DNA of 33,243 nt from Pelomyxa schiedti (Eukaryota; Protista; Evosea). Every line of letters begins with the position of its first letter. Within the stretch, counting starts at the first letter, position 1. Of this stretch, positions 1,469 through 31,602 are shown piece after piece. Where the stretch lies: positions 1 through 33,243 of the forward strand of contig JAHLWZ010000984.1 in the NCBI GenBank assembly GCA_020536535.1. Direction: 5' to 3'. The position numbers and the translations under genes were made by a program. The notes beneath the pieces are model-generated. The model saw nothing but the letters and a program-made list of their open reading frames with translations, was not told where the DNA came from and did not search any database.

Positions 1469-1580
1469 GTGTCAGGGTTTACGATGATGGCGTCGCTCAC
1501 AACAACCGAGACTGGTTTGTCACCCCACTTTTTCCTTCACTTTCATTCAGTTCGGGTTATAATAAAAACCAGGCATCGAA

Positions 1581-5440: not shown

Positions 5441-5736
5441 GGTCGCTAAGCACGCACCTTCATTCTGCCCCCACCCAACACTCCTGCAATGGAAATAAGT
5501 TATTCTTAGTAGTAACAACTATTATCATCAATCATGTGCGGTATTGTGGGAAAATGGGGGAGACTCACTCTCACTGACAGTAACACTAATACAAAGCTGT
5601 CAGATAGCCACCAATAACAAATACAAGCAACAAGTTTCACACCATGCACCTGCACCACAGTGCGTCTGCTCAGTTTGAATGGTTTTTGATAAAAAAGTCA
5701 CCAGTGTTCCTGACTTTGAAAAAAAGAAAAACAACA

Positions 5737-8700
5737 ATGGCAGCATCCCCTGTCTCACCGACCACGGTGGCGATGGTTGTTGATCAAAAGTTGACAAGCG
5801 GCGCAACCTACACAGGGCGCCTGGTAAACAACAAGTGCGACGGCAGAGGCACGTGCACGTGGCCCAACGGCACCACGTACTATGGTGAGTGGCACAACGG
5901 CAAGAGGGACGGGTGGGGGTACAAGATAGAGCGGTTCTCGCAGTTCGAGGGCCTGTGGAGGCACGGCAGGTGGAAGAGGGGAACGTTGCACCACAAGAAG
6001 GGCGTATATGTCTATAGTGGTGAGTGGGTGCTGAATGAAACAAACAAAAAAAGGAAATATTACCTGCAAGGGTGGGGTGTGAAAAGGAGGAGTAGGAGGC
6101 ACAGCACCGAACATGACGCGGAAACAACAACTACGGTGTATGAGGGTGAGTGGGACAGGGGCAAGTATCACGGATGTGGCACGTTGAGGTCATGTGATGG
6201 CTCAGGTGACATCTATCATGGCATGTTTGATCACGGCAAGAGGAGTGGGAAAGGGAGGATGCTGTTTGGTGACAACAACCAAGGAGGAGGCAGCTACGTT
6301 GGGGAGTGGAAGGATGACATGTTCCACGGTCTGGGTGTAAGACTGTGGGCAAATGGTGACAGGTATGATGGTCAGTGGGTGTGTGGCAAGGAGAACGGTG
6401 AAGGAACAAGCACGTGGGCACGTGATGGGAAATCGTTTGATGGTGTTTGCGAAGCGGGTGTAATCAAGTCGGGCACAATGAGGTGGCCAAATGGTGACCA
6501 GTTCTCAGGCACGTTCAGGGGGGATGGTGTTGGGGAAGGAACAGCCACATTCAGGAGTGGCAGTGGTGGGCCCACATCGGGGGTGTTTCTCCAAGTTGAA
6601 GGCACTCTGAAGGAAACTGGCGTTTTCCAGGGACAAGAGAACAGCAGCATCAGCCATTGCATGGGAGGTGGAAACGTGCAGATGGAAGTGTGTGTTGTTG
6701 AGGTCATTCATTCTTTTCAATTTTCAACAGATCAAAGAGAGAAAGCACAAAAATAAGATTCAATCGTTGAAACAAGAACTCCAACAAGTGAAACAGAAGC
6801 TGGACAAACAAACTGAGTGTGAGTGTGTTGTGGTCTCATCCTGCTTCTTTTCTCCAAGATTTAAAAAACCTTCACAATGTAGGCTTTGAGCACTTGTTGA
6901 AGCACATTCAACATGGTGTTTGGATGAAATCGATTGGACAAGGTGAGACACAAGATGATGTTCAAGTCTGTGTGATGAACAAGGTGTCAGTCACACTGGA
7001 AGGTCACAACACCACATTCCCTGAATCTGTTTGTTCATTGTGCCCATTGGACAAGGTACAACCAAAGAATGAAAAAAGTGTCTGATGAAGAATTAATTGT
7101 CCAAACACACAGGTCGTGAAGATGGAAGTTGAGAAGTTGTTCGGAGTGGATGAAAACCAACAAGTTGTCACTTTCTCCACCATTGATAAATCTGATGAGG
7201 TTGCACTCTCACTGTCATTGTCTGCCATGCCGTTATCTCAACTGGCATCCCATTTTCCTTTGGAGGATGTTCCAGGTTCTTTTTTTCTCCCTTCGTTGGC
7301 ATGACACAGTCAAACAACACAGAGGTGAAGGTGAGGATGATGCCAGTCATGGCCATCAAAGAAGAAGAACTGAAATTTGTGTCACCTTTGGGAAGTGGAA
7401 GCTACGGGTCAGTGGGCAAGTTCATCCACACTCCCACAGGCAGACAAGTTGCTGTGAAAACGCTTTATGACATCATTGCGTCAGACAGGAACATTGAGAG
7501 GTTCAGGCTTGAGGCAGAGGTATTTACATTCATCCATTCCTCACATTGCCAGTGTTTTCAGATGCAACATAATCAAACACACACAGATTGTGAGTGGGTT
7601 GAGGCACCCCAACATCCTGAAGTGTGTTGGAACATCAATCACCACTGGAACTGGAAAACTTCAGATTGTGTCAGAGCTCATGTGTTGCAGTCTCAGGCAA
7701 CTTCTGAAGCAGGTTTGATGACTTTGATTCTGGTTTTCTGTTCATTGCCACGACAATACATCTTCATCATCTCCAGAAGAAGCAATTGAGCGTCAATGAA
7801 GTAGCAGCCATTTCACTGAATGTTGCCAAAGGGATGGACAGCCTCCACAGGTTTGTAGTGTTGCATCCTAAAAAATTGGCATGGCATCCCCATTTCAAAC
7901 ATACTAGGCAAAACTTCATGCACCGTGACCTGAGCAGCAACAATGTTCTTTTTGACTCAAATGGAATCCCAAAGATTTGTGACTTTGGTAATTAACGTTC
8001 CCCCTTGATTCTTCCTACACAACACAAAGGTGAATCCCGAGCAATGGACACACAACAAGGAACAGCAAGAACCATTGTGCCTGGAACACAAGTTTACATG
8101 GCCCCACAAATGTTCACAACACATTATTCATTTGAAGGTTGCCCCCTTCTTCACAAGTGTCACTAGGGTTGTGCGGGATATAATAATAAATTAAATATCT
8201 CAAAAGATGTTTTACAAAAACCAGTTCTGTTTTTCTTTCTGTTTACTAAATATATGTTTTCAAAATAGGGGACATTTGGGGTTTTGGCATTCTGGTTTCA
8301 GAGATGCTGAATGGTGACATTGTTGGCTCTCCCTTTGACAGACTCCCTCTCCAGTCACAAGCAAACTTCATGACCGAACAGAAGAGATTGCTCTCACATA
8401 CAGAGGTTGAAGGTTTGAATCTCCTCTGTTAGTCTCTATGCCACTAAGGAACTAAACAGAAGTGGACAAACTGTGCCAGGAAATGCTGAGCCAGAAATCC
8501 AGTGACTCAGCGATTGCGAGTTGCCTCAGCCGTAGGAATGCTTCCCTTGATGCCGTGATCCGCGCCGCTCATTCCCCTGATTCCCTGATTATGTTGCCGG
8601 CAACAACAGCAGCAGCGGATCTCATCGTTCTTGTTGTTCAGTCATGCCTCTCCATCCTCGGTGTGTGGCGTTTGAGCTCCTTCTCACACCTATTTTATTT

Positions 8701-8937
8701 CACCCACCAACCAACCAACCAATCACACACACAGAGAGGAACCGGATGCCCTTCACTGTGATTTCCAAATTGCTGTTGTGTGTGTGCACCACAATCTTGT
8801 CGCACCACACAACAGGGGGTACTGCTGTTGATAGAGTGACAGATGACCGAGTCAACGAGTCCATCGAACGGTGGCTCAATGCACTCGCCCCTGCAATCCA
8901 CGCCACTTCATCACCCTCATCCTCATCACACTTGTAA
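5737..8937 (+). CDS. MORN-repeat + coiled-coil + ubiquitin-like + TKL-type protein kinase, paralog K1 (12 exons)
   Basis: Introns 6688-6730, 6819-6858, 7056-7112, 7276-7322, 7520-7586, 7713-7776, 7851-7907, 7988-8029, 8138-8268, 8413-8459 and 8661-8734 give an open frame. It contains MORN repeats, a Ubl-like segment (VKMEVEKLFGVDENQQVVTF, weaker call) and kinase motifs GSGSYG, VAVK, HPNI, HRDLSSNNVL, DFG, YMAPQ, DIWGFG. Confidence 0.9.
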
Positions 8938-9223
8938 CTCGAAAAAATTGAATTGATGGAGTTAGATGAGGAACAAAAAACAAAACAGATGGATCAGGTG
9001 CCGTAGGTTCAACCAGCGTTGAAGAAACTACCCGCGCATACGAACACAATCCTTTTTGTTGTGCAACGTCTTTTCTTGGTTTTTTCTTTTTAACGTTGTG
9101 TGGGGTGAAACACAAATAAGTAATTGGAGCTCGTACTTTTTTGTGTTTCACTCACGACTATGTGACCGGTTTGAAAAGCCTCCACCGGTTTGGGCATGCA
9201 ATCAATGCATAACACACGAAGGC

Positions 9224-9797
9224 AGGCAAAACTCCATGCACTGCCACTTGAACAACAATAATGTTCTTTTTATTCAAATGGAATTCCAGGCTTTGTGACT
9301 TTTGATAATGACCTCCGCTCCAAATTTCATTTCCACAAAATGAACAAAGGAGTTTCCTGAGAAATGGATCAGCAACAAGGAACAACAACAACAACAACAA
9401 CAACAACAGGAGCCATTGTGCCTGGAACTGTTGTTTACATAGCTCCATCGATGTTCACGACACATTAGTCAAAGGTTGCGGACAAACAACTTACAAATAC
9501 CCTTCTTTTAATCGGAAACATAAAAGAAGGACATTTGTACATTTGCATACTGTTGTATCTATTTTCACCAAATATTTACCTTTTTTTTGTTTTTAGGAGA
9601 CATCTCGGCATTCCTGTGGCCGAGATCCTGAATGGTGTCATTGTTGACTCCCCCTTTGACAAAAACTCCTGCTCCTCTCACAGGCAAACTTCATGATTGA
9701 ACAGAAGCGATTGCTCTCTCCGCCGGAGGTTGAAGGTTTGTTGTGTTATTCACACTGATCAAAACAAATCAAACATAGGTGGCCGAACTGTGCCGGG
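9224..9797 (+). pseudogene. Decayed fragment of the same kinase (about subdomains VIb-X)
   Basis: Collinear with K1 7908-8480: MHCHLNNNNVLF replaces MHRDLSSNNVLF, the segment is frameshifted, CCATTGTGCCTGGAAC and CAAACTTCATGATTGAACAGAAGCGATT are retained, and there is a (CAA)n expansion at about 9381-9408. Confidence 0.9.
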
Positions 9798-10099
9798 TTG
9801 TGTGTTTGAGCCACAAGCAAGGCATATCCACTTCCGCTTTCAAGCGGACTTATTTGGGGTTACAAGTTTGCCACAACCCAGCCTAAAAAACAGCGATTGC
9901 AATAAAGGAAGCACTACCGTTTTAAGTATGCCACATCCTCCTCCCACTTGGTGTTAGTTTTAATTAACATTCCGGCAACTGCATCGCAAACAGCACAAGT
10001 TGGCCCTCTCATTCCCTTTCGCTCTCGCCAAAGGTAAAAACCACCTTCATACCACACACCCCTCCCTCTCAGTCCACCTTCACGCCACATGTGCCTGCT

Positions 10100-10140
10100 G
10101 TCGCGACGACAAGGTGAACGGCCGCGGCGTGTACAGGCAG
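10100..10140 (+). pseudogene. Tiny MORN-repeat relic
   Basis: Translates as RDDKVNGRGVYR, compared with CDDSLHGRGRYT in K2. Very short. Confidence 0.4.
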
Positions 10141-10282
10141 GTACACAAACAACAACAATGTGGGAATGCTACCCTTTGCTCATCAAGGCACAAGAAAGGC
10201 TAAAAAGTTGCTGGATTTCTTATTCGATTTTACTCCTTTGTTATGTTGGTGGTTTGTCGTGCAGGCTCTGAGCCCAGATATC

Positions 10283-10305
10283 CCAATCAGAAGACCTTCC
10301 GCGAA
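10283..10305 (+). promoter_or_regulatory. CCAAT box + TTCCGCGAA upstream of K2
   Basis: CCAATCAG at 10283 and TTCCGCGAA at 10297-10305, with the ATG at 10329. Confidence 0.35.
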
Positions 10306-10328
10306 CTAATCGGTCCATTCTCACAACA

Positions 10329-13300
10329 ATGGCAACGAGGGCTCCTAGGTCCACTGCCACAGCAACGGTGACGATGGTTGTTGAACAAAAGTTGCCAGGC
10401 GGGGCAAGGTACACGGGTCGCCTCGTCAACAACAAGCGCGACGGCAGGGGCACCTGGACGGGCACGACCGGCGAGGCCTACGACGGCCACTGGTGCGACG
10501 ACAGCCTGCACGGCCGCGGCCGGTACACCTGGCCCAGCGGCGACGCCAACGACGGCGAGTGGCACGCCGGCAAGCGCGACGGCTGGGGCGCCCACCGCCA
10601 CGCCGACGGCGGCCGCTTCGAGGGCCTCTGGAGGGACGGCAGCTGGAAGAGGGGCGCCTGGCACAGCAAGAACGGCGTCGACGTGTACGACGGCGAGTGG
10701 GCGTGGAACGAAACAGACGAGGTGTCTGACATGCAGGGGTGGGGCGTGCAGAGGAGGAAGAGGCAGGCGGACAGCGGCGGCGATGTGGCAACGACGACGA
10801 CGACGACGGTGTATGAGGGCGAGTGGGACGGCCACGAGTGGCACGGGAGGGGCACGTGGGTGTCGCCTGATGGCTCGGGTGACATCTACCACGGCATGTT
10901 TGAGCACGGCAAGAGGAGCGGGATTGGGAGGATGATGTTTGGCGGGGAGGGAGGGAGCTACGTCGGGGAGTGGGAGGACGACGTGTTCCACGGCCGGGGC
11001 GTGAGGCTGTGGGCAAACGGCGACAGGCACGAGGGCCAGTGGGTGTGTGGCAGGGAGGACGGCGAAGGGAGAAAGACGTGGGCGCGGGATGGGAAATCGT
11101 TCGATGGTGTTTGGGAAGTGGGTGCGATCAGGTCGGGCACAATGAGGTGGCCAAATGGTGACCAGTTCTCAGGAAGCTTCAGGGGGGATGGTGTTGTTGG
11201 GGAAGGAACAGCCACGTTCAGGAGTGGCAGTGGTGGGCCCACATCGGAAGTTAAAGGAACTCTGACTGAAAACGGTGTTTTCTGGGGATGTGAAAACGGC
11301 ATCAGCCATTGCATGGGAGGTGGAAACATGCTGTTGGAGGTGTGTGACTGTCTTGCCACGAATTTCTTCACTCTTTTCAACAGATCAAAGAGAGAAAGCA
11401 CAAAAAAAAGATTCAATCGTTGAAGCAAGAACTCCAACAAGCGAAACAGAAGCTGGACAAACAAACTGAATGTGAGTGTGTCCTCTCATTATCATTCTGT
11501 TTCTTTTATTCAGAGAATCAAAAAACCTTCACGGGCAGGCTTTGAGCACGTGTTGAAGCACATTCAACATGGTGTTTGGATGAAATCAATTGGACATGGT
11601 GAGACACAAGATGATGTTCAAGCCAGTGAGGTCTGTGTGATGAACAAGGTGTCAGTCACACTGGAAGGTCACAACACCACATTCCCTGAATCAATTTGTT
11701 CATTGTGCCCATTTGACAAGGTACAACCAAAGAAAGTGACGATTAAGGAAAAAAACAACACACACAGGTTGTGAAGATGGAAGTTGAGAAGCTGTTTGGA
11801 GTGGATGAAAACCAACAAGTTGTCGCTTTCTCCATGATCGATAATCCTGCCAAAGAAGTCATACTATCGCGATCATTGTCTGCCATGCCATTATCTCAAC
11901 TGGCACCCCATTTTCCTTTGGGGGATGTTCCAGGTCTTCTCTTTCTTCTTCAAAAACAAACACCCTCCACCCACAACACACAGAAGTGAAGGTGAGGATG
12001 ATGCCAGTCATGGCCATCAAAGAAGAAGAACTGAAATTTGTGTCGCCTTTGGGAACTGGAAGCTACGGGTCAGTGGGCAAGTTCATCCACACTCCCACAG
12101 GCAGAGAAGTTGCCGTGAAAACGCTTTATGACATCATTGCGTCAGACAGGAACATTGAGAGGTTCAGGCTTGAGGCAGAGGTATTTACATTCATCCATTC
12201 CTCACATTGCCAGTGTTTTCAGATGCAACATAATCAAACACACACAGATTGTGAGTGGGTTGAGGCACCCCAACATCCTGAAGTGTGTTGGAACATCAAT
12301 CACCACTGGAACTGGAAAACTTCAGATTGTGTCAGAGCTCATGTGTTGCAGTCTCAGGCAACTTCTGAAACTCTGTGCTGCAAAAACAACACAACTGAGC
12401 ATCAAAGAAGTTTCAGCCATTTCCTTGAATGTTGCCAAAGGAATGGACAGCCTCCACAGGTTCGTGTGAAAAATTCCTTCTCACTGGCATAACAACGACT
12501 ACCTCCACAGGCAAAACTTTATGCACCGTGACTTGAGCAGCAACAATGTTCTTTTTGACTCAAATGGAATCCCAAAAATTTGTGACTTTGGTACGACGGC
12601 TCCATCTGTATTCTTCACTTCCCACACAAAACAAACAGGTGTTTCCCGAGCAATAGATCTACCACAACAAGGAACAACTACAGGAACCATTGTGCCTGGA
12701 ACACCTGCTTACATGGCCCCACAAATGTTCACGACGCATTATTCATTTGAAGGTTGCAACAATTTTTATTAATTCGATAGAATAATAATCAAAATAAGAT
12801 TATTATTTTCAATAAATATTTACATTGTACTGCTGAACAGGAGACATTTGGGGGTTTGGAATTCTTGTTACGGAGATGCTGAACGGTGAAATTGTTGACT
12901 CCCCGTTTGAAACGCTCCCGGTCCAGTTCCAATCAAACTTCATGATTGAACAGAAGCGATTACTCACACCTCCGGATGTTGAAGGTTTTATTCCCTCTGC
13001 GGGTCTATCCATTCCGCTCATCCATTCAAACAGAGGTGGACAAACTGTGCCAGGAAATGGGGAGCCAGAAATCCAGTGACTCAGCGATTGCGAGTTGCCT
13101 CGGCCGTAGGAATGCTTCCATTGATGCCGTGATCCGCACAGCTCATTCTCCAGCAACAGCACCAGCAGCCGCGGACCTCATCGTTCTTGTTGTTCAGTCA
13201 TGCCTATCCATCCTTGGTGTGTTTGAGCTCCTTCTCACCCCTAACTACATATATGACTGGACCAACCAAATCACACACACAGAGAGTAACCGGCTGCCTT

Positions 13301-13446
13301 TCACAGTGATTTCTAAATTGCTGTTGTGTGTGTGCACCACCATCGTGGCGCACCACACAGGGAGGACTGCTGATCGAGTTACAGATGATCAAGTCAACGA
13401 GTCCATCAAACGGTGGCTCAATGCACTCCACACCTCGTCACACTGA
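10329..13446 (+). CDS. MORN-repeat + coiled-coil + ubiquitin-like + TKL-type protein kinase, paralog K2 (11 exons)
   Basis: Introns 11340-11383, about 11476-11515 (shifted, uncertain), 11721-11767, 11934-11983, 12181-12247, 12460-12510, 12591-12638, 12753-12840, 12985-13033 and 13217-13282. Same motifs as K1 (GTGSYG, VAVK, HRDLSSNNVL, DFG, YMAPQ). Confidence 0.85.
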
Positions 13447-13489
13447 GTTTACGGCTTGTCATCAAACCAAACCCGAAGATTTGATGGTT

Positions 13490-13505
13490 CCACTGCGCGG
13501 AAATC
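13490..13505 (-). promoter_or_regulatory. Same candidate element, inverted, upstream of A2
   Basis: CCACTGCGCGGAAATC is the reverse complement of GATTTCCGCGCAGTGG. Confidence 0.45.
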
Positions 13506-13692
13506 ATGGTGACACCTTCACACCTCAATGTTTTTTTCCTCATTTCCTTTGGGGCGAACCTCTTCAACAAACAACATGAACAAAGGCCCAGAGTCAGCGC
13601 AAGGGCCCTTGAAGGTCGAGCATTGTAGGTCCTTCCCCTCTTTTTCCTTTCTTCTGTCGGACACGAGAATCAAAGTCAACCGAAAAGAAGGC

Positions 13693-16040
13693 ATGGACAA
13701 GCGAAGTTATCCGTCATCGTCGTCACCGTCACATGTTCTCGAAGTGTCGCGTCTTGTGTTGGACATGGTGGTGAGGCCTGGTTGGCTCGACAACGACCGC
13801 AAACGCGAGCACAAGGTATGCAGGAACACGGACCTGTTCCGTGTCGGCGAGGCGATGTTCCCCCTGGTCGGGGTCGTGTGCTCCAGGGCAATCGCACTTG
13901 GTGTCGCTCGCCGCGAGAATCGATACTATGCGATCACGAGTGCTGCCAGTGTCCCTGCCCCTCGCTGCGTCGCTTGGCTCATCAACAACAGGGACTGGTG
14001 CTTCCACAAGAACACGTTTGGTCGTCGAGTTTTACTGCAACCCACACCATCAGCAGCAGTCACTGCAGCTGCAACTGAAACAGAGGGCACAATCAGCAGC
14101 CACCACAGAGGTGTAGCGACACGAGATTGTTGTGGAGTGGGAGTGGTGGTGGAGGAGCAACAACGTCGTGATTGGGGGGAGTCATTGTCTGCTGTGAAGG
14201 AGGTTGTGGCTGCACTCATGGGTTTGTGCATCGGTGGCCACCTGCTGATGGCCAAGGCAATGCTGGGATTCGGCCTAAGTGATGGAGCAGTGACTAATGG
14301 CGGGCAATGTTTGTGGGATGGGTGGGGCGTTTTTGGCTGGGGGTTGTTGAACAAGGAAGTGAGAAACGGGTTGAGGGAAAGGGTGATTGAGTATGTGAGG
14401 GAAGATTGTGGGAAATTCATGTTCCTGGAGCGCCTGTGTGGAACTGGTGGCAACTTGGATGTTGTCAAGTGGTTCGTGGATGAGGTTATGGGAGGTGTGG
14501 AGCATGGAAACGAAACAACTCTGCGTTTGGTTCTGCATGAGCCCCTGAAGACGTGCTTGGGGCGTGGGAACATGGAAGTTTTCAAGTGGCTGTTTGACAA
14601 ACTTGAGATGGGGGCCAAACCACTGGCTCAACCTGAGCACAAGGATCTATTCTTTGCCTGCGCCTTTGGAGAGTGTCCTGGAAATTTCAAGTGGTGCCTT
14701 GAGAATTTACAGGTGGGAAACAGCAAGGAAACTCTTGTTCGAATACTGCTGAAAAACAGACACGCAACTGTGAAGGATTTTCAATGGCTTGAAGGTGATA
14801 TCTGTGAACATGGACTTAGTGGTTGGTACCTTGTTTTCGAAGCGATTCGAAAAGTCGATGTCGCCAAGTGGTTGCTTACTTTGTTACCCTCCAACAGGCT
14901 GGACGAGCATGAATTCAATTGCCTCTGCAAAAATACTGGAGACACAGAATTTGTTGAGTGGTTGATAAATGCAAAGAATTGTACTCCCACAACAGAGTCC
15001 TTTGTATCAGCATGTTCAACATCAGCAAAGCATGGTTCATCACTTGCAAAGTGGCTTTCAACGAGGGTGACACTCTCAGAGTCTGACATCATACACTCCC
15101 TGGTTCAGGCACTCCGTTGGAACAACATCGAGGTGGCAGAATGGCTGGAGGGTACCTTCCACGTGATGCAGTCAATCAACAGCAACCCAGAGATTGCAGG
15201 AAACGCATTGGAAGAGCTATGCGAGGGGTGCCCGCAAGTTATCACAGACAGGTTGGATGGTTTGAAGTGGTTCATCAAGCACCTCTCCTCACCCTCTTCA
15301 CTGAAAATGAGCTCCATTCACAACGCTGTTTCCAGGGCATTGACGGATCCCCTTCCTGATACTGCTGCGTTTGTGTTGGAAAGCTTCCCGCAGTTTGATC
15401 CTCACGTTGACCAAGCACTGCTTAATAAGGTCACATTGGCCTTCATGAAGTTCAACCAGAGTGCACTCACCAAGTTGGTTTATGCTGATGGCTCTTCATT
15501 GTTGACACCTGAGTCTGCTGCGCAGTGCCTCACATCCAGTGATTTCTATCCATTCTCCAGCAAGACTGTCAAGTGGGTGATTCGCAGGTTCAACCTGCAG
15601 TACGACCACATCAGAGCCAACAACAACCTTCTGCTTTTCAAGTTGTTGTCTTGGAAGAAGAATGGGTGTGCTCAGTGGCTTCTTGACTCCTTTGACATCC
15701 CTCTGAATGATGTATGTTCTAGTCCACTTTAAACACAAAGTCCCAAAAACAACAAAAGGTTACTGAAATGGCCAGAACCTGCACTGAATTTAATTGCCTT
15801 GACCTTGTTGGATGGAAGTTGCTCGAGAGGCATTTTTACCCCAAAATTGATGCTGCAATGATTCGGAGTCACTTCATTCCAATGCTTTCCAAGTCACCAC
15901 ATGTGGCAATACACACCATCCACTCCTTTGGAATCACCCTCAATGAGTTCCATGCCTTTGTGAAAACGCAAAGTATTTACAGAGTTTCTGAAGCCACAAA
16001 GATTTGGTTGGGAATGATTGATCCCCACTCTCTTCTGTAA
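13693..16040 (+). CDS. Ankyrin-like/helical-repeat protein, paralog A2 (2 exons)
   Basis: Collinear with A1, with an intron at the same position (15712-15758). The start could instead be the upstream in-frame ATG at 13576. Confidence 0.85.
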
Positions 16041-16248
16041 TTTAAGACAACTCTTTCCCTGTGTTTTTTTCCAACACAACATAAGTAACATTCACACTGG
16101 TGGTGTTTTGTGATTGGACTCAGGAACCGGATTTTGGGACTCAATGCACTGTCTCCTGCAATCCTCATCTTCACTGAGAATGACTCACTACAAACCTGGC
16201 GTGACTAGATCGTTCTGCGTCGTGGATGTTTTGGGTGATCAAATAAAA

Positions 16249-17175
16249 ATGATGGACCAGGTGCGGGAGATGGTGACGTCGGTTCGGCGTATGAAGAAGC
16301 GCCAGGTACCCCACACACTTATGGGTGTATTTGTTCGCAGCAAAATCCTTTTGTTGTGGGGGAAAATATCTGTCTCTATGTCTTTTTTTTTTTCAACGTT
16401 GGGTACTCATTGATGTGATGTGATGTGATGTGTGTGTGTGCAGTTCATGCAGACGTGTATCAATTTTGGACAAATTGTTGCTTCTGCACTCATAATTTGG
16501 AAAACATTGATGATCCTCTCTGGGAGTGAGAGCCCCATTGTAGTTGTTCTCAGGTAAAAACCTACTACTTGATATATTTCAATAAGTAATTACAGTTGTT
16601 AATACTGAATGCCCGCGACTTTTGTACTTTCACTCACGACTTACCTCTGGTTGCAGCGGAAGCATGGAACCTTCTTTCAAGAGGGGAGACCTTCTCTTCC
16701 TGGTCAACTATGAGGGTCCTTACAATGAAGGAGACATCGTGGTTTATAACGTTGATGGACGTGACATTCCCATTGTCCACAGAATTCTTAGAACGCATTT
16801 GAAGTAAGTATTCCCGTATAATCCGGCATCGTTTGTTCCACTTCTCCCCCTTCCAGCCACCAAATTTCCAAACCCCTAACCGCATCGGCAGTGAAGATGG
16901 CAGTCTGAAAATGCTCACAAAGGGCGATAACAATCCTGTTGATGACCGAGGCTTATACCAACAAGGCAAACTGTGGCTTTATCCAAATCAAGTTATCGGC
17001 CGCGCGAAAGGGTGTGCACTTGCACCTCAATTTTTACCAACTCACTCAAATTCTAACAACGCCAAGGTACCTCCCCTACGTCGGGATGATCACCATCGTT
17101 ATGACCGACTATCCCATGCTCAAATGGGGGATGATTGCCATCCTTGCAATTTTCGTTCTTATCAATAGAGAATAA
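16249..17175 (+). CDS. SEC11: Signal peptidase complex catalytic subunit (S26B), 5 exons
   Basis: Introns 16306-16443, 16554-16656, 16804-16891 and 17012-17066. Motifs [43 protein letters not shown] and LPYVGM are present, and the Ser/His/Asp catalytic residues are intact. Confidence 0.98.
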
Positions 17176-17227: not shown

Positions 17228-20200
17228 TCAACTGGCAAAGTGGACCAGGTACCTTATTCTGGCCTGTTCTACACGGTACACTATGTGTTGGTGCTCTACA
17301 CATGAGACATTCTTGTATGGTGAATCGATGATGTGGCCAACTGGTACTACTACATTGTCCCTGTGTTGTTGTGGTGATTGGATTGTTAGTGTAAAGCATG
17401 GTGGATAGGACTACACTCACTCTATTGTCATCTGGTCGGCTGGATTTGGTTCTTGGTAACCAAGGGCCCAGGTGGAATCAAACCCGGGAAGTGCCTTTTC
17501 CATGTACTGGTCACGAGGGAGCTGGGCCGGCTTGCCAAGTGCCACCTCAACCAAGAGCATGCAGAACTTAAAGGCATTAGGGGGAATTGTGTGTCGTGAT
17601 ATTGAATGGAATACATCGGAATGCTGTGACCGGCAATAGCGGGAAGCAAGCTGAGCAATGTCGGCAAAGTAGACTATTTGTTTTTTGGACCAGTGTGAGG
17701 AAGAAAAGTACTTACGGCCTTTGCCAAAGCGGTAGCCAGAGGCAGGGGCTTCCGGAGGGGCAATTCGGAGACCTTGGGATATGATTCCAACGAACTAATG
17801 AATGGTCAATGGAAAAAATCACAATGCAGAAACAGAACATTGGTTAAGCAGGACCCGTGCCATAGGAGCTTTCTGTTGCCAAGTACTTTGCTTGGTTCAA
17901 ATCTATCAGATTCTCCTGCCCTGCCATGATGTTAGTTCTTTGCGGAAGAGGTAGAATTTACCTGTCAACACGGTAAATGTTCTTTATTGTTGGGGTGGAT
18001 CTTGGGTGTGTATTTGTGACATATCTAGGAGTAATCAGTTTCCAAACAAGCATAAAACATAATATCTTACTTTTGAATCATTTGCCAATCCTCTGAGCCG
18101 GGTTCGACTGGTTCGATTGCTGCATTCAGCTTGGCATAACATGCATCCACGGAGTTTCTGTCATCTGAGTCTGTCTCTTGAATTATCTTGGTAGCAATCT
18201 CAATATCCGCCAGAGCTCCGACAAGGCGAATTTTATCCTTCAGCATTTCTTGGTTGTTGATAACTGTATTGAAGTTGAATTGGCGAAAAAAGTTCTCAGG
18301 GAAAGTACCAGGTGGCCTAACACGCCCGGTGATGTGTGGGATCTTCCTTCGAAATTGTTACTAAAAACTGGAATTAAAGTTGAGTTACACATAGAAAAGT
18401 GAAGAGTATTGTTCCAAAAGATCGAAGTTTGGGTGTGGCTTTTCCAACTCTTCCTCGATTTTCTTCAAAAAAGAATAGCCTGACTGTATGGAAGCCTTGG
18501 TAAGTTTACCTACCAAGGATCCCGTAAGTGTATTAAGCGCACTGAGGAGAATACTAACCAAGAGGACTTTTTTTCACATCGAACTCCAAATCAGTCATTA
18601 TTCTCTACGAATACAATTACAACTACTATGCCAAAATTTACATCAGGTACCTCCATCATTTTCAAATCAAAAATCATTTTAATGAGCGACTGTACACGTG
18701 GCTCCAGGGTCGAAGTAGTGGCAGCCTTCTTTGCAGCTGCAGTACCCTGTGAAAAAGAATGAGACTTGCTGGCTAAACCAAGGTTCTAAAAATTTAGACC
18801 AATTGTTCAGGGTCGGGTTTAGGAGTGCAATCTATTTCAATCAACGTGTACAACCCACTGCGGGGACTAAAGTTCTCTCTGTTGGACCAATGGTTGGCAG
18901 TCTTCGCTGTAAATCTAGTTCACTATTTAGAGGTGGATTTTAGTGTGGGAGTGGGGTAACTTGGCTTCAAACTGTTTTTTTGCCCTATCTAGGGAGCAGG
19001 GTGGGAACAGCTTGTTTTGACCACGTTCTCCAACTGCAGAGTAATGAAAAAATGGTTTAAGTGTACTCAGTTCATACCTCTTCCCCATCTATTCCACACA
19101 TAAAAGTTACTGGAATCTTTATCTTCCTGAAGAAGTTGGATTGCATAGAATTTGTTGTTGTTATTCCTAATGTTCGTTTGATTCAACATGCAGTCCCAAA
19201 TTGTATCTGATTCCTCATAGACATGATACTTTTCAGAATGAGGAACATATGTATCAACAGCAGCAAGTCCCTTGACAATTACGTGTTTTTTCTGTCACAC
19301 GTTGGCCAAATGTTAAGAACTATGAAGGTAAACCTGTCGAGGAGCTGAAGGTGATTGGGGTCGTTCCAGTTCCTGTGGGGGCTCTGGGGTTGTTGATGAA
19401 GTTGTCGAAGTGGTAGATGTTGTAGTTGAGGTTGTTGGGGCTTCCGTGACAGCCTCCTCTGTACCTGGGGGAGGAACAAGTTTTGGTGGCTCAGTATCCA
19501 CTTCCAAAGGTGGTCCTGTGCGATGTGTGAGCAATACTGCGATTCGTATTGTCAACATACCAACAAGAGACAACGATCCGATCTGAGCAATAAGTGACAC
19601 AATGGATTGTGAGTCAGCGACTTGGATGCCAAATTTTAGGGTCCCACTTTGTGATTGAATCGGTGGTCAGAACCTGCAAGAAAGTGTCATTTCCACGGAA
19701 ATGAATTTGTAATAATGCACGCCTTAAGTATGCTCCGGCATTGTTGGATTGTCTCTGCAAGAAGGGGCAAGTTGGTGCCTTCTTTAAGAGGCAATTCAAA
19801 TCTATGTGATGCGGCCTCAATTTGTGCTGACAGACACTCCAGGTGACTCAGCCTCTCTGCTGCCCGGAAATCTTTGTTTTGTCAAGTTACTCTAGGGAAA
19901 GGATAATTGTCAACAAAGTTCAAACCACAGGCTGCCTTCAACTTGGAGCTGGCCTCAAGCAAAGCGGTTCTTTTCTTCTCAACCTCTTCAGAAATTCGGG
20001 CAAACTGAACAGTGACATCATTCTCAAACTTGGTGATTATCTTTGGGAAGAAGGTTGATGCCAGGGAAGGAGAGAATTGGACTGTTACCTCAGCATAATT
20101 GCTGGTTTCAGTGAGAACTTCATCCTGAAGCAAAGAAAGAGAATTGAAGCGGTCTTTGAGTTCCTGGATGCAAGCAGACAGTGTTTTGTGGCACTCGTCA

Positions 20201-21407
20201 CTCCAATCGTTGATTGGAACTACATTGTGCCCTTTGTGTGAACCAAACTGGGCACACACCATGCAAATTGCACGTTGGCATAGTTCATGATTATCAGCTG
20301 TTGTTGATGACTTGCAGAACAGTTTCAGAGGTTCGTTATGCTCCTTGCATTTCATGATCTGTGTGGGTGGGAAAAGGTGTTGTCTGGCCGAAAGGTCACC
20401 TGCTGTTGGATTGGTGGCGCTCAACTGAGTTAGAGTAATACATGTGGAGTTCCTCAAATCACACACGCGATCATGCATCGAGCACATAGAACATCCGCAG
20501 TCTGCACATGTGACAGTTGCCTCACTTTCACATTCCATGGAGCAACTCACGCTTTTCGGTGCTGTGTGTAAGTGAATTTGTTGTTTGATTGTTGTTGTGC
20601 GATTACCTGCTTTGAATGTATTGATTGCCGGGAACAGTGCCTCATTAACAGCGAGGGCCTCACTTGTCTTGAGTGACCTTGGAACCACTCCCATTGCCCC
20701 GCACAACGGGCACTTGATTGGATCAGTCAAAGTGTCAGCACTCTCACTCCCTTTGCTTGTTCCACCAGCCTGCCAGAAAACCAGTTCATATATCATTATA
20801 CCATCAGCAAAACCCAGTTGAAAAATCCCGCATAGACTAACTTCTCGGAGCCCGCATTATTACGAATTATTCAGCAGCATTATTAGCGACGCATGTATTA
20901 TACCCATAATTTCCATACCTCAGTCACAGCAGCAACCCCCACCCCCTTCCCCGGCAAGCGCGACGACGACGACGCGGCCCCCTGCCCCCCCCCGCCGCGG
21001 CGGGGGCTGCACAGGATGGCGAGCGCCCTGCCCGCGTCGGCGCACGCCCCGCACACCGTGTGCCCGCACCCGCACGACCCCGGCATCACCGCCGGCCACG
21101 CCCCCGCCCCCGCCCCCGTGCCCGTGCTTGTTGTGCTTGTGGTTGTGCTTGTTCTTGCGGTGGGGCTGGTGGTGCCCGGCGCGGCGGGCGTTGGGGATCG
21201 GCACTCGTAGAGCCGGCCGCACACGCCGCAGCGCACGCGTTCGTAGTCGACAGCGTCTGCACCAGAAGTGTAATTTTGCGGAAACATTGGCAACGGTCCC
21301 TTTTCTAAATCTTGTTTGTTGGAAAGGGCACCTTGGGAAGCGGCAAAATTGGTTGAGTCCTCAAGCGTTGGGAAGAGAATTGGTACCGCTATTTTCAGCT
21401 TCTCCAT
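17228..21407 (-). CDS. TRIM-PARP fusion: RING, B-box, B-box, coiled coil, T/P-rich linker, WGR, PARP regulatory domain, PARP catalytic domain (H-Y-Q); about 20 exons
   Basis: Exons (minus): 21407-20919, 20769-20089, 20040-19926, 19871-19697 (or 19721), 19646-19561, 19515-19334, 19291-19078, 19033-18961, 18914-18800, 18746-18651, 18604-18559, 18509-18389, 18346-18309, 18263-18071, 18024-17962, 17920-17839, 17794-17716, 17673-17615, 17566-17421, 17360-17228. Motifs: CGVC...CGHTVCGAC...CPLC; CKEH..LKLFC..ICMVC..H.GH; LNQTNIRNNNNKFYAIQLL...[60 protein letters not shown]. Confidence 0.9.
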
Positions 21408-21564
21408 TTCTTTGTTGTGTGATAACTTTTTTCCTGGTTCACAATAAATGCTCATTGGCAATGTTTGGTAATTAACAAACTTTTTTTTTTTTCTGTCACT
21501 GTTGGCTATGTTTACACAAGGTGGATAACCACAATTTGAGGGGATGTCGGGAGTGACCACAAGA

Positions 21565-24090
21565 TTATTCAGCGGAAGGGACAATAGGTGGCTGTTGCTG
21601 TTGTTGCTGAGCCAGTTGTGCTCGCTGTTGTAGTACAAGCAATACTTGTTGCTGTTGTTGCTTTTGGGCATAGTCCAGTTCACTCGTAAGAGCGAGGCTA
21701 CGCCGAAGATTTGAGCATGCAGCAAGAACGCAATCCTTCATGAATGTAAGTGGAATACCTATGTGGGTGAAGTTAGTGTACAGGTATTGGGGAATGATGA
21801 CAAACCGTCGCCGGCCGGAACACAGCTGCGGCAGCACCATACAAAGTCTAGGAGGTAGGTTTTGAGTATGTGGGCGAGGGAGTCTATGAAAGCGGTTGAC
21901 TTCTTGATGTCGATGCTGCCTAGGGCACACCATTCTGCAAATACAGTCCGGCTTCCTTTTTTAGAGCCGGAACCTGATGCGGAGCCAAATGCATTGAGAA
22001 ATGATGCCGCCCGGTTTGACTCATATTCGGCAATTTGAGGACCAGTAAGTTCATCTTCAACGCACTTGGTGAGTTTTCCTATCCACTCTACAATTCTGGG
22101 CATTGCTGTGGTGCTGAGGAGTGGGTACCCAGGTTCGTTCCGGGCCGTAATTTCCCAAACATGGCTGGGGAATGTCATGGGGTGGGAGTCGGTTTTATTG
22201 TTTGATGTCTCACTATTGGTGGAGGATGTTGTTGTGGATGTAGCAGAGGTGCTGTCAGTACCCCCGATTTCTGCGGTCTCTGTTGATCCAGAGGAATAGC
22301 TCAATAAAAATTCAATCTCGTCCTCAGCTTCCACATCTTTGGCTCCATTTTCCCCAACAAAAACCGTTTTCCTTGTCTCATTCATGCTCGAAGTGAAATG
22401 TAGTATCTTTTTTGAAATTAGATAGAGGTAGTTGTAATTACTAATTTCTCACCTCTTCCAGCCTTCTAGCTTGTCTCGGAGTAAGCACACAGGCTAGGTG
22501 TTCTGGTTGCAATATTTTCGGGGGATTTTCTGCCAGATAGGCATTCAAGCGGATCCGTACTTCCCTCACCCATACTGCAGCTAAGTGTTGTACGAGGTGA
22601 CATTTATCCAAAGATATATCCTTTTCACCGCACGTAAGAAGAAACTTGTGCATCAGCTTTTCATAGAGGTATCGGCTCTTGATTTGCTGTTGTAGCTGTG
22701 CAGCTGCAGAAACGGGTGCTGTGGAGTTAAGATCAGCGGTGACAAAAGCGATGATCTCTTCATGAGAGGCTGTTGGAGGGAGTACATGGTCAGCTTTTGT
22801 AGTGTGACGGGCTACAAGTACAATCTTCATTTCATTGAGAGGGTAGGGTTGCACTGTGGATGAATTAGTTCTTTTATCCGGTGAGGAGCGCGTTTGTCTA
22901 GCTCTTTTTGTCTGTCTGATTGGCCGTCTCCTGGGTGGAGATGGTTCTGGGGAAGGTGATAGTTCCTGTTGGGTCTGGGGCTCATTTTTTTGTTGTTCTT
23001 GTTGCTGTATAACCCTCTGCAAACCTGGTTGGAGAGCTTGTTGTAACACTTTCTGCAAATGCTCCGGATCCGGTACATTAGATTGCTGCGATTGGGATTG
23101 AAACATTGCCTGCGCCTGCGCTTGTTGTTGTTGAAGTTGAAGCAATTGCTGTTGCTGCTGCCACTGTTCTATTTGGAGGAGAAACTGCTTTTGCTGTAGT
23201 GCACCAACGTCGACTTGTTGTTGCATCTGCATGTTTTGCAAGGGAAGGGGTTGAATGGGGTTTGAGGGTTGCATTGTCTGCTGCACGTGAATTTGTGGAG
23301 CTAATTGTTGTTGTATCGGTTGAGCGAGTTGTTGTGGGAGCTGCTGGGGGATCTGTTGCTGGAGTTGTCGCATCTGCAACTGTTGGAGTTGTTGTTGCTG
23401 TTGCTGTAGCCTTTGCTGGATTTGTTGTTGTTGCTGTTGGAGTTGGTGTTGTTGGAGTTGTTGCTGCTGATGCTGGAGCTGTTGCTGCTCCAATTGCCTC
23501 TGGTCGAGTTGTTGAATGTCCAGCTGGTGTTGCTGTTCTTGCTTCACAGTTTGTTGCTGCATTTGGTTTTGTAGGTTGTAAATTTGTTGGATAGGCATGA
23601 AGTTGGGGCCTTGTTGCATTGGCGGTTGTTGTTGCAACTGAAGTAGCTGCTGTAGCTCTACCTGTAACTGGTCTGGAACCTGTTGCCTATTGTCTGTAGC
23701 TCCCCCAGCAAGGATTAAGTGAGAAAGTAGGTCCCTCTTCTGTGCGTATTCAGCCTGCTGAGCAGCATCATAGTTAGGAGTAGGTCCCTGCTGCTGAGCC
23801 AGCATCAATAACCGGGAAGAATCCGAGATAGTGGCTGCTCCAGGAGGGTTATTGCTAGGGTCACCAACAACAAGGCCACCAATCCCAGTTCCACCCATTC
23901 CATTACCAATTCCACCACCCATCACCATACTTGCTGCCATTTGTTGTTGTTGTTGAGGAGGAACAATGGTGTTGTTAGTAGTAGGGAGGAAGCCTGGGAT
24001 TTCCTCCGGCTTGATTCTTATTCCCGCGGAAGGGACAGTGCATTCCATAGTCTTTTGTCCTTGTGCCACAAGTTGGAAATTCGTATTCAT
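21565..24090 (-). CDS. SPT3: SPT3/SUPT3H-like (SAGA, double histone fold) protein with long Q-rich N-terminus, 3 exons
   Basis: Introns 22452-22407 and 21805-21759. YEKLMHKFLLTCGE...LVQHL...ILQPEHL...RRLEEIL resembles the TAF13-like N-terminal fold. YESNRAASF...FAEW...FIDSLAHIL resembles SPT3 Y.ECRQASF...FREW...IIDILGFL. The match is divergent and was judged by eye. Confidence 0.7.
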
Positions 24091-26242: not shown

Positions 26243-27536
26243 TTACCTAAGCTGACAATGCAACTGAACAAGTACAATGCCAGAAAGTGTATCACACAAG
26301 TCAACAAGGAGGCATTTGGAAGTATGAGTGTGGCTCTTCTTTGTATCAGTTGCAGTTGTAGTGGTACATCTTTGGCCAGTTGTAGGAACAGCTACAACAA
26401 AAGGGACAAAGCCACAGTTCCTGGGATTCAGTTGAACTTGGTATGCACACATTGGAATGTGACGCAACCTACGTGGGTTGATGAGGTCGGATGAGTGGAA
26501 CACACTCATGGATTCACTGAACAGGTGGTGTGGGCCAAGACTATGCAGAACGGGGACAGATGATGTGTTCAGTACTGTCTCCTTGGTGTTGGTGTTGAAC
26601 AGATACCATAACGGGGGGACGTTGCATCGGTGTAGTGTGTGAAGTGTGTTGTTGATCCAAATGAAATCGTAAGCAGCGGGTGGTGCGCTAATGACCTTGT
26701 CAATGGCCAGTGCGTTGCTCTCAAATGACCTCGGCAAATCCACAATCAGCACCTCAGTCGAGTCATCGGATGCAATACCCTTCATCAGGATGGCTTTGTT
26801 CCCATCAGAATGCAACAGCTTCCCAGCAATAAAGAAGGCCCACGCTCCAGATCGGCTCAGGTGAAGCCTTATCCCGTCGCTCTCATCGTGTGTCAAGCAG
26901 CCATCAGCAAGCCTCCACAGGTACACGCTTGATTCAAAGTGGAAAATGAGCCAGCTTGCATTCATCCCAATCAGCTCGAAGTCCTCTGTAGGAAAATGCG
27001 CCAGGGTCCTCACGCACAACCCATTCCTGCCGGCCACAAACACCGTTTGGCCGTACGAAGCGTCAGGTTCACCAACAAATCCTTCCATCAGGAATGTGTT
27101 CCCATCACCGAATGCGGCATAAATGTTGCTGCAGTCGTAGGGTTTCGACAGGCAGTGGAATGAGCCGCAGTCGACGACGCCAAGCGTTGGTGACTGGCAC
27201 ACCCATAAGTGCACTGCATCGCCCTGATGTCCTGTCATTGTGCACACCCTCCTCGACTCCACAGACATCACCCATTTTTTACCCCACTCCACAAACAATG
27301 GGGCCATAGACACCAAGCAAGAAATTGGTGGTGATGGTATCACTCTGTTGACATTCGGCTCATAAAGATTTATTCATTAATTAATTTGTTCTTATTTAAA
27401 CTCAAGTGAGTGTACACCCCTCATGTCTGTTTGGTCTTGGGAATACCTACCGACCGTCATTTGAAAAATGAGTTATGGGAGCGCACGCGACGGCGATGAA
27501 CTGGTCCTTGGCCGACAACACCGCCGAAACGCTCAT
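26243..27536 (-). CDS. AKDQF/SPTLGVV family protein, copy 1
   Basis: Exon 1 MSVSAVLSAKDQFIAVACAPITH, intron 27450-27345, then a long exon 2 with VEWGKKWV, SPTLGVV, WINNTLHTLH, LHC. Confidence 0.85.
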
Positions 27537-27611
27537 TGATTGTTCTTGGAAAACGTTGTTTATTTGATTGTCCAAAAAAAACATCCAGTTCTTTTTTGCT
27601 TGTTTTTTTTT

Positions 27612-28694
27612 CTAGGGCTGACAATGCAAGCTGGCAAGTGCAATTCCAGAAATGGTATCACACAAAACGACGCGGGTGTGGTTCGTTGCATTTTCTGTAT
27701 CCGTCGTTGGTGCAGGAACCGCCACAGGAACAAACCCACAGTTTGCAGGCTGAAGGTGAATGGGAAGGTGATGGACACAACAGGGAGTGGTGAGGTCTGA
27801 TGAATGGAACACACTCATCACTTCACATTTGTCAACGAGGCACAGGTGGTGTGGACCAAGGCTTTGGTGATAGGAGGACGGAAACGAAAATGTGTGCAAT
27901 GTTTCCTTTGTGTTGGTGTTGAACACATACACCATGGACGGGGACTCCATGACCAAGTGTACTGTGTGCAGTGTGTTGTTGATCCAGATGGAATCGAAAG
28001 CTGCAGGTGGTGTGCTCAGAACCTTATCAATTACCAGTGTCTTGCTCTCAAATGTTCTCAGTAAGTCTACAAACAGTATCTCAGACGAAACCTCGTTACC
28101 CTTCATCAGGATGGCTTTGTTCAAGTCAGAATGCAACAGGTTCCCACCAAAGAACAACCACAGTGCTCCAACCTCAGATAGGCCCAACCTTCCCACCAGT
28201 CTCCCATCGCTCTCCTCCTTTGTCAAACAGCCATCAGCAAGCCTCCACAGGTACAGTCCTTCGTCGAAGTAAAGGAATAGCCAGTTTGCATTCATGCCAA
28301 TTAGTAGGGAGTCATCAGAGCGAGCTCCAACATCACTGAATGCAGCATAAATGTGAGTGATAGACTGAGCTTCTGGGCAAACAAATGAACCACAGTCAAC
28401 GACACCCAGTGTTGGTGACACATTAACCCATAAGTGCACGCTATCCTTTCCTTTTACAGTGCACACCCTCCTTGATTCCACAGACATCACCCATCTTTTT
28501 CCCCACTCCACAAGCAATGATGGGATGGACGCCAAGTGGCAAATTGGGGGTCTGACGTTTTCATCGTTACTCCCGTTTCTATTAGTTATTTCTTATGTCT
28601 TCGTTCACCTGTTGCCACTGGAAGAGTGAGTTATGGGAGCGCACGCGACGGCGACGAACTGGTCCTTGGCCTTCAACAACGCTGATACGCTCAT
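27612..28694 (-). CDS. AKDQF/SPTLGVV family protein, copy 2 (internal in-frame deletion)
   Basis: Exon 1 MSVSALLKAKDQFVAVACAP, with a short predicted intron 28608-28579. Lacks the roughly 30-aa GNTFLMEG...RTLA block. Confidence 0.8.
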
Positions 28695-28749
28695 TCTTTT
28701 GATTGTTCGAGAAAAAAACATGTTGGAAAAGCCTCCTCTTGTTACATCA

Positions 28750-30051
28750 TCAAAGTTGACAATGCAAGCGAGCAAGAACAACTCCAGAAATGGCATCAGA
28801 TAAATCAAGTATCACGCACTTGGAGGTGTGAGTGTGGTTCCATGCCATTTCTGCAGCTGCAGTAGTGGGGGGAACAATCACAGGAACAAAGCCACCATAA
28901 GTGGGTTGAAGTTGAACTGGTAATGCACCCACTGCAAGGTGATGGACACGGCAGGGTGTTGTGAGGTCTGAGGAATGGAACACACTCATCACTTGGCTTG
29001 TGTCAACGAAGTAGAGGTGGTGTGGACCAAGGTTGTGGCCATAGTAGGGTGGGCACGAGAACGTGTGCACTATCTCCTTTGTGTTGGTGTTGAACACACG
29101 ATACGACGAGGCCAACAGTGCAAAGTGCAATGTGTGAAGCGTGTTGTTGATCCAAAAACAATCGCAACCTGCAACTGGTGTGATAATGACCTTGTCAATG
29201 ACCAGTGTCTTGCTCTCAAATGTCCTCAGTAAATCCACAATAATGACATCAGTAGAGGAATCAGTACCCTTCCTCAGGATGGCCTTGTGCACATCAGAAT
29301 GCAACAGGTTCCCACCGAGAAAAAAGGCCCCACCCAGAACCACCTTAATCCCATCACTCTCATCATCTGTCAAGCAGCCATCAACAAGCCTCCACAGGTA
29401 CACCTCTCCATGGAAGTAAAAGATCATCCAGTTCGCATTCAGCCCAACCAGTGAGAAGTCTTCCTCTGCGTGAACTTGTGGGAAAAATGCCAGGGTCCTC
29501 ACATACAGTCCACTCCTGTTAGCCACAAATATCCATGGGCCCGTTGTGGCAATCGGATCATCAGGGTCACCAGAGTTGTATCCTTCCATCAGGAAGGTAT
29601 TCCCCTCACTGAATGCGGCGTAAATGTGACTGTAACAGTATTTGGCCGGGCAGTTGAATGAACCGCAGCCAACGACACCCAGTGTTGGCGACACCAGCAC
29701 CCATAAGTGCCAACAAATCCCACCGCGCTCCTTTCCTTGTACAGTGCACACCCTCCTGGATTCCACAGACATCACCCATTTTTTACCCCACTCAACCAAC
29801 AGTGATGGTATCGATGCGAATTGACAAATCGGTGGTGGTGGTATCACTCTGTTGCACATGTGCATTTACATTAGACTCATTTCTATGCCTATTATTGTTG
29901 TGTTTTATTTATTTCGACTACGGGTCACGAAAATGTTCCCATTGTATTGTTGTTGAAATACCCACCGTCCATCATTAGAAAAGCGAGTTATGGGAGCGCA
30001 TGCAACGGCAACAAACTGGTCCTTTGCCTTCAACACCACAGAAACACTCAT
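28750..30051 (-). CDS. AKDQF/SPTLGVV family protein, copy 3
   Basis: Exon 1 MSVSVVLKAKDQFVAVACAP, intron 29965-29849, same motifs as the other copies. Confidence 0.85.
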
Positions 30052-30139
30052 TGACGGATTCTGAGAAAAAAATCAAGCGAACAACAGTTTGCAGCCAAAG
30101 GAATGCCTCATAACACCAAAAAACAGTGTTGTTACTTTC

Positions 30140-31444: not shown

Positions 31445-31602
31445 CGTGATGTGCGGTTCGCTTTGTTGGAAAACAAAGCGATTTCAAGGAAGGCCTTTTT
31501 CTGATCAAAAAGTTTAGTGATTACTGGAGGTCCAGAAGAAAAAGTGAAGCTGTGGGAATTGGCTTTCCACAGTGTAAAGCCAGGCAGGATGCCATGTTGT
31601 TC

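Follow-up and report, generated by a model that had tools for sequence, protein, structure and literature searches.

A TRIM-PARP chimeric gene of recent origin in the anaerobic amoeba Pelomyxa schiedti

The free-living anaerobic amoeba Pelomyxa schiedti carries a chimera of a TRIM gene and a PARP gene that is real at the level of DNA. It lies on the minus strand at 21407-17228 of the window, i.e., the whole stretch of 33,243 nucleotides (nt) of contig JAHLWZ010000984.1 (assembly GCA_020536535.1) that was analysed, and runs over short exons in the order RING ligands, B-boxes, coiled coil, Thr/Pro linker, WGR, regulatory (HD) and catalytic ADP-ribosyltransferase (ART) domains. The evidence supports a single gene, young and single-copy, in which a RING-B-box-coiled-coil (RBCC) module (5' half, 21407-19500) is joined to a WGR-HD-ART module (3' half, 19499-17228), with both parents traceable in the same genome. 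Pfam searches of the window, run exon by exon, matched zf-B_box at the second B-box (PF00643, 4.6e-7), WGR (PF05406, 1.2e-11), PARP_reg (PF02877, 5e-10) and PARP (PF00644, 4.6e-20); together with the zinc ligands, these bear out the domain order that the initial annotation had read from the minus strand, though not the route it took as normal across the join.

Two parents and a breakpoint

A search of the 52.4-Mb genome with the locus divides it in two: from 19499 to about 17220 it matches a gene on contig C508 at 88-91%, introns included, while above 19499 it matches several RBCC genes at about 67-70%. PARP homology begins at 19499 and TRIM homology stops just before it. The 5' half belongs to a local RBCC-FN3 family, its best TRIM-side paralogue P0001 (Pelo_4859, of the form RBCC-FN3-Gly-rich) showing 56% identity over ~510 residues, and all six of the six TRIM-side introns sit at paralogue positions. 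The last TRIM-derived codons, GPPLEV, correspond to the start of the paralogues' FN3 exon, and directly after them follows sequence of the C508 parent, in frame. The 3' half is a DNA duplicate, with introns retained, of the BRCT-WGR-HD-ART gene on C508; upstream of the breakpoint this parent has a basic stretch resembling a nuclear localization signal (NLS) and a BRCT domain (4.5e-6), and BRCT-WGR-HD-ART is the common form among its relatives. Thus, the breakpoint, the limits of the two homologies, and the parent's upstream BRCT together with that common form show that a DNA copy of the last three domains of a PARP took the place of the FN3/Gly-rich tail in an RBCC-FN3 gene already present in the genome. 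A derivation of the parent from the chimera was rejected, as BRCT-WGR-HD-ART is widespread and the breakpoint cuts an FN3 exon. The join itself is bridged by single contigs of two DNA runs, X3 (contig 19376-20993) and X4 (contig 19376-21822), which extend at least 123 nt past the breakpoint on the short side; the assembly may have been built from these runs, but several sites distinguish the two, and the join is thus not the error of one library.

A search for the leftover 5' half of the duplicate found none, save C4067, a 93% copy of the parent's first-exon region. Fragments on C2513 and C4067, 93-95% identical to the C508 PARP gene, represent either a third recent copy or a divergent allele; C2513 contains an inversion that may be a misassembly. 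In the C508 parent gene, sequence is repeated at both flanks of two scaffold gaps (2654-2874 and 4851-5070), assembly artefacts that may break the parent's annotation.

The features of the chimera (aa, amino acids) are as follows.

20919..21407, minus: exon 1; start ATG at 21407 (alternatives 21452, 21287); RING ligands 1-6 (CGVC ... CGHTVCGAC), divided by a ~50-aa Thr/Gly-rich insertion; homologous to P0001 residues 2-101
20607..20769, minus: exon 2; RING ligands 7-8 (CPLC); Gly at the Arg "linchpin" position of many TRIM RINGs
20089..20561, minus: exon 3; degenerate B-box1, intact B-box2, start of the coiled coil
19723..20040, minus: exons 4-5 (20040-19926, 19871-19723); coiled coil; intron positions match the paralogues
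19722-19674, minus: intron 5, 49 nt; GC-AG here, GT-AG in the paralogues; competing GT donor at 19720
19561..19673, minus: exon 6; TRIM linker-2 helix region; site of a 2-nt difference at 19638/19639
19614..19616, minus: premature TGA of the window allele after the 19722-19674 splice; 482-aa RBCC-only product
19499..19515, minus: first codons of the ancestral FN3 exon (GPPLEV), then the breakpoint 19500/19499, in frame and mid-exon
19334..19499, minus: Thr/Pro-rich linker, inherited from the PARP parent on C508
18800..19291, minus: WGR domain; three exons; equivalents of Y569, W589 and R591 present
18150..18746, minus: PARP regulatory (HD) domain; five exons; RNA joints
17228..18150, minus: ART catalytic domain; His 17859-17857, Tyr 17671-17669, Leu at K903 17650-17648, Gln at E988 17290-17288, stop TGA 17230-17228; RNA joints

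Tail to tail with the chimera, with stops about 50 nt apart, lies a SEC11-type signal peptidase gene on the plus strand (~16220-17175; Peptidase_S24/S26 matches and one RNA joint). The rest of the window displays local duplications at 340-16040, where tandem MORN-repeat genes, some with kinase exons, are interleaved with two ankyrin-like genes of ~700 aa. On the minus strand at 26243-32751 are five tandem paralogues of ~310-430 aa with a common "VEWGKKWVMSVESRR" motif, the two scanned with Pfam giving no match.

Reading frame, alleles and transcripts

The initial annotation had removed about 19 short introns to obtain a single fusion frame, with 19647 as the acceptor at the junction and 19720 or 19696 as the donor. 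However, a phase-0 intron is present in each of the paralogues P0001, P0002 and P0003 at the position equivalent to 19722-19674, and a tblastn search with P0001 reveals a change of frame at 19638/19639, where the window and run X3 have 2 nt fewer than run X4 and the paralogues; the X4 form reads as the paralogues do (WDPL). When the intron is placed at the paralogue position, the X4 allele is open to the PARP stop and encodes 1,047 aa, whereas the window allele stops at 19616 after 482 aa. Splice scores from a rough model built on 39 local introns, 34 of which are 40-60 nt long, are +3.7 for acceptor 19674 against -0.7 for 19647, and -9.7 for donor 19696; for the donor of intron 5, the GC at 19722 (-2.7 bits) lies slightly above the GT at 19720 (-4.2), too close to settle which is used. 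The paralogue intron position, the splice scores and the X4 allele thus point to 19674 rather than 19647 as the normal acceptor. Donors 19720 and 19696 do yield open frames with 19647 in the window allele only (1,038 and 1,046 aa respectively, with 20 introns each), and a third route in that allele, 19722-19674 with 19621-19516, is open for 1,026 aa. The canonical 47-nt splice from GT19720 to AG19674 was rejected as a compensating one, since it yields a stop at 465 aa in both alleles. A one-polypeptide product is plausible chiefly for the X4 haplotype, the window haplotype being frameshifted unless a weaker splice is used.

The RNA data, assembled contigs from two runs of one study, have a depth of ~4-14 that declines toward the 5' end. 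Eleven introns of the PARP half, between 17361 and 18960, are seen as RNA joints, and spliced RNA of the chimera type reaches 19239; confirmation of the annotated introns thus extends to these eleven, while the TRIM half and the join are without RNA contigs. The contigs are mixed, some carrying the chimera's letters and some those of the parent. One from the chimera copy combines X4's letter at 17471 with letters specific to that copy, a hint that expression comes from the intact haplotype, if the phase from 17471 to 19638 is as we infer. Within the PARP half there is no exonic in-frame ATG before mid-WGR (19189) and one in-frame ATG inside intron 6; the former favours translation from the TRIM start.

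Predicted activities of the two halves and constraint on them

On the TRIM side, eight of eight RING zinc ligands are present (C60, C63, C114, H116, C119, C122, C183 and C186, in model numbering), with loops of ~50 and ~60 aa that are longer than usual. Owing to these long insertions the RING on exon 1 has no Pfam match; it is detected at 3.5e-11 by a local RING profile that includes the paralogue P0001. The B-box2 ligands align, the PF00643 match is above the cut-off, and the coiled coil follows directly, the window exons aligning to a 110-residue helix of the paralogue. B-box1, in contrast, is degenerate, the last two His ligands of P0001/P0002 being missing, so that of the RING/B-box/B-box/coiled-coil module initially described the first B-box stands only in part. 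As B-box1 is optional in TRIMs (PMC2533329), membership in the TRIM/RBCC family is unaffected. The missing ligands are replaced in the window by 42 nt (20466-20425) with GT, CTAAC and CAG that resemble an in-frame intron at a site where the paralogues have coding sequence, a possible intron gain. A fold model of the RBCC of P0001, with a 16-sequence alignment, tests the family rather than the chimera: its RING segments have pLDDT 80-94 around disordered insertions, the 110-residue helix is formed, and the best PDB matches are TRIM5, TRIM28 and TRIM72.

The PARP half follows, exon by exon, the clade 1 order typical of PARP2/3, and retains 3/3 of the DNA-binding residues of WGR, Y569, W589 and R591 in PARP1 numbering. 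Its catalytic site departs from that of the complete PARP2/3-type module that had been annotated: alignment to PARP1 places Gln at E988, Leu at K903 and Arg at M890, giving a triad H-Y-Q, which is not a poly-ADP-ribose site (H-Y-E with K903). Parent and chimera agree in Q988/L903, and Q988 occurs in 34 of 117 relatives, nearly all with L903. In a tree of PARP relatives made by a quick method with no bootstrap, all 36 of the 36 Q rows, the chimera among them, fall inside one 40-row branch (SH-aLRT 99), whose named members are mostly Amoebozoa, e.g., Mastigamoeba, Ceratiomyxa, Sappina, Cochliopodium and dictyostelids. Being common to the parent and one well-supported branch of relatives, H-Y-Q is inherited and not a mark of decay.

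The branch thus forms a clade whose members are BRCT-WGR-HD-ART PARPs bearing Q988, L903 and R890, most of the named ones being amoebozoan. The Dictyostelium discoideum Adprt belonging to it may be Adprt2, as size and domain order suggest. No paper describing the clade as such was found, with no search aimed at it having been made. In PARP1, elongation falls 2800-fold with E988Q, and the natural absence of this Glu is a hallmark of mono-ADP-ribosyltransferases (PMC6486540); by this analogy the ART of the chimera would be a mono-ADP-ribosyltransferase at most, and the ADP-ribosylation proposed for it would not extend to chains. The same precedent suggests DNA-activated mono-ADP-ribosylation by the clade as a whole. 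Dictyostelium has a mono-ART activated by DNA breaks, Adprt1a (PMC5333086).

Comparison with the C508 parent reveals how this half has been maintained. The exons are 94.9% and the introns 86.4% identical, with synonymous divergence (dS) 0.125, nonsynonymous divergence (dN) 0.033 and dN/dS 0.26 (Fisher p 5e-9); indels number two in 1,623 bp of exons, both in frame, and 18 in 648 bp of introns. The low dN/dS and the rarity and in-frame nature of exon indels argue that the PARP half was kept coding. The chimera has 17 derived changes to the parent's 10, an excess that is not significant (p 0.25).

Competing readings, proposed function and known systems

We give about an even chance to the best explanation, namely a translated, partly constrained TRIM-PARP fusion made by domain swapping. 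Several rivals have to be set beside it. An amplification or assembly chimera might be suspected as the published assembly pools amplified single cells (PMC8887013) and the parent's scaffold has duplications at gap flanks; yet the join recurs in both DNA runs although their haplotypes differ, and a divergence from the parent of 5% in exons and 14% in introns marks the PARP half as a separate locus. These facts largely refute an assembly chimera, and an artefact of either kind is extremely improbable. The route of the initial annotation, by which the window allele makes the fusion via 19720 (or 19696) to 19647, with the 2-nt loss compensating for a weakened GC donor, can draw on the three open routes in that allele, the frequency of AAG acceptors in the gene and a branch-like CTGAC motif before 19647. 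It has to contend with the inferior scores of acceptor 19647 and donor 19696, with introns of 74 and 106 nt that are long for the locus, and with the removal by these routes of part of a linker kept in all paralogues, and we judge it quite improbable. Alternatively, the locus may make two products: a TRIM of RBCC alone (465 or 482 aa), and a WGR-HD-ART protein translated on its own from the in-frame ATG at 19558, within intron 6, or from 19189. The canonical splice that ends the frame at 465 aa in both alleles, the RNA seen only in the PARP half, and the 45-nt, stop-free intron 6 with its ATG would all suit this. But the absence of 5' RNA says little at such depth, there is no sign of a promoter region for the PARP part, the 5' end of the parent being absent from the copy, and ATG 19558 belongs to an ordinary GTATGT donor of an intron that the paralogues share; two products thus appear improbable.

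A number of observations weigh against the translated fusion. The donor it requires at intron 5 is a GC (1.59% of introns in the species; PMC8887013) of poor score, the neighbouring GT leads to a stop, and the frameshifted allele of the window is present in the sequenced culture. No RNA contig covers 19240-21900, i.e., the TRIM half and the join, which given the low depth and its fall toward the 5' end is weak evidence; in addition, intron 18799-18747 is unspliced in both covering RNA contigs, one of which has the next intron spliced, and its retention would end the frame before HD. Within the RBCC, B-box1 has degenerated, and the RING is interrupted by long insertions and carries a Gly at the linchpin position, which is a caution for the predicted ubiquitin ligase (E3) activity. 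Among near-invariant residues of the PARP half, R865C (R in 116 of 117), the Thr of FYT to Val, the Tyr of IEIDY to Cys and an HD Glu to Gly have changed; as the only RNA contig to cover the HGS exon differs there at three positions, as many as the parent does, R865C may be allele-specific or that contig a mosaic. The chimera's branch is 0.059 against 0.022 for the parent's, and constraint looks looser on the chimera; moreover, dN/dS cannot part selection before the fusion from selection after it. Hence one might see a chimera on its way out, one translated for a while, or whose PARP copy was selected before the join, and which is now decaying with no distinct function. The GT-to-GC change of donor 5 in both haplotypes, the frameshift in the assembly and run X3, the lost B-box1 ligands, the changed PARP residues and the retained intron all fit such decay, and a genome with at least 150 B-box and 37 PARP-domain matches is expected to generate many short-lived shuffles. 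Opposed to this are 1,620 nt of PARP exons without stop or frameshift, the retention of every splice site, spliced RNA from the chimera copy, and the dN/dS, which reaches at most ~0.55 even if every amino-acid change is assigned to the chimera branch (a ceiling from arithmetic assuming equal synonymous rates). We regard decay as somewhat doubtful, though it has to be taken seriously.

TRIMs form dimers through their coiled coils and their RINGs are activated by clustering via B-box2, while in PARP2 activation proceeds by release of the HD. If the translated fusion is taken as the preferred reading, the intact haplotype, whose open frame is observed, would encode a 1,047-aa protein of RING, degenerate B-box1, B-box2, coiled coil, WGR, HD and ART. 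Its coiled coil would form an antiparallel dimer, placing two WGR-HD-ART modules where the target-binding domains of TRIMs sit. PARP2 bridges DNA ends (PMC7608914), and the paired WGRs may bind DNA ends, which would open the HD and let the H-Y-Q ART attach ADP-ribose as single units, not chains, while DNA binding and B-box2 contacts could gather the RINGs and turn on ubiquitylation. With the parent's NLS and BRCT gone, the chimera probably acts outside the parent's nuclear repair role; the loss of the NLS-like stretch, of which one KKR remains, suggests a non-nuclear site, which is a guess from sequence, and the action in repair initially proposed is less likely than for the parent. Selection has kept the PARP half coding, though apparently more loosely than in the parent. 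Going further, the intact allele may be a working TRIM E3 with a DNA-break sensor as its target-recognition part, in which binding of DNA ends would turn on mono-ADP-ribosylation and RING-dependent ubiquitylation in one dimeric protein, possibly acting on cytoplasmic foreign DNA in an amoeba that houses prokaryotic endosymbionts. This we hold only tentatively and consider rather doubtful; if true, it would be a TRIM C-terminal class that we did not find described.

Irrespective of function, a gene birth has been caught early, with both parents, the exact breakpoint, the age (dS ~0.13), and intact and frameshifted natural alleles in hand. If the protein works, it offers a natural test of WGR DNA-end binding driving TRIM RING activation, as well as of how ADP-ribose and ubiquitin are coupled within a single chain. 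The locus further draws attention to the H-Y-Q PARP clade, whose activity is predicted from sequence. Set against this, the chimera is a single young copy in a single species, it shows signs of decay, and no RNA contig spans the join.

Sequence searches yielded no second TRIM-PARP example within their limits of length and ranking, which fall short of an exhaustive search for the architecture. The 120 best-ranked WGR-HD-ART relatives, 327-1,040 aa in length (the 1,047-aa fusion lies just over this range), carry neither a B-box nor a RING; for 37 TRIM relatives, the 25 most frequent families include neither PARP nor WGR (seven rarer families being outside these); and 80 metagenome WGR loci gave no B-box. 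A literature search likewise found no TRIM-PARP architecture: a PARP C-terminus is absent from TRIM surveys (PMC3503706, without the term "PARP", and the human table of PMC2533329), as is a B-box from a PARP survey that includes ubiquitin-related fusions (PMC2964712).

On the PARP side, the chimera has the same WGR-HD-ART core, WGR residues, and His and Tyr of the triad as the clade 1 PARPs (PARP2 and PARP3; BRCT-WGR-PRD-catalytic, PMC2964712), differing in its RBCC N-terminus in place of NLS and BRCT and, relative to PARP1/2, in the replaced catalytic Glu and K903. Its nearest relatives in this clade, Mastigamoeba m51a1_g9470 (57%) and dictyostelid BRCT-WGR PARPs such as KAN0032467.1, have the H-Y-Q/L903/R890 pattern in common with it. 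A second parallel might be drawn with combinations of ubiquitin and ADP-ribose functions. DTX3L-PARP9 and RNF146 are examples of such pairs. The U-box-Macro-PARP of Dictyostelium and the Clade 6A PARP-UBCc fusions are also described (PMC2964712), and the earlier statement that this crosstalk usually involves separate proteins was thus too strong. All four likewise unite ubiquitin transfer with ADP-ribosyltransferase functions, but in none of them does the chain also carry a TRIM RBCC or a WGR-HD switch responsive to DNA breaks. In two metagenome loci (L063:4122-6461 and L071:2041-4355) a RING-WWE gene, with an RNF146-like domain pair, stands head to head with an intronless WGR-HD-ART gene ~110-130 bp away, so that a PARP gene neighbours the separate gene of an E3 that probably reads PAR; these gene-dense contigs may be viral, and L063 also has an intein-bearing open reading frame.

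On the TRIM side, the Pelomyxa RBCC-FN3 paralogues KAH3763280.1 (56% identical to the chimera over ~510 aa), KAH3757336.1 and KAH3744517.1 have the same RING-B1-B2-coiled-coil order and intron positions, and the order recurs in the TRIM FN3 subgroup (TRIM9, TRIM67, TRIM18/MID1, TRIM36 and TRIM42; PMC2533329). From these RBCC-FN3 TRIMs the chimera differs in having WGR-HD-ART instead of the FN3/Gly-rich tail and in the loss of two B-box1 His. As for its origin, the closest analogy appears to be TRIMCyp, which is a retrocopy. In that case too (TRIM5-cyclophilin A in Aotus; PMC2533329), a young TRIM had its C-terminal recognition domain swapped for a copy of another gene. The Pelomyxa insert, in contrast, is an intron-bearing DNA duplicate that would supply an enzyme together with a DNA sensor, in a chimera known from sequence and with a predicted function.

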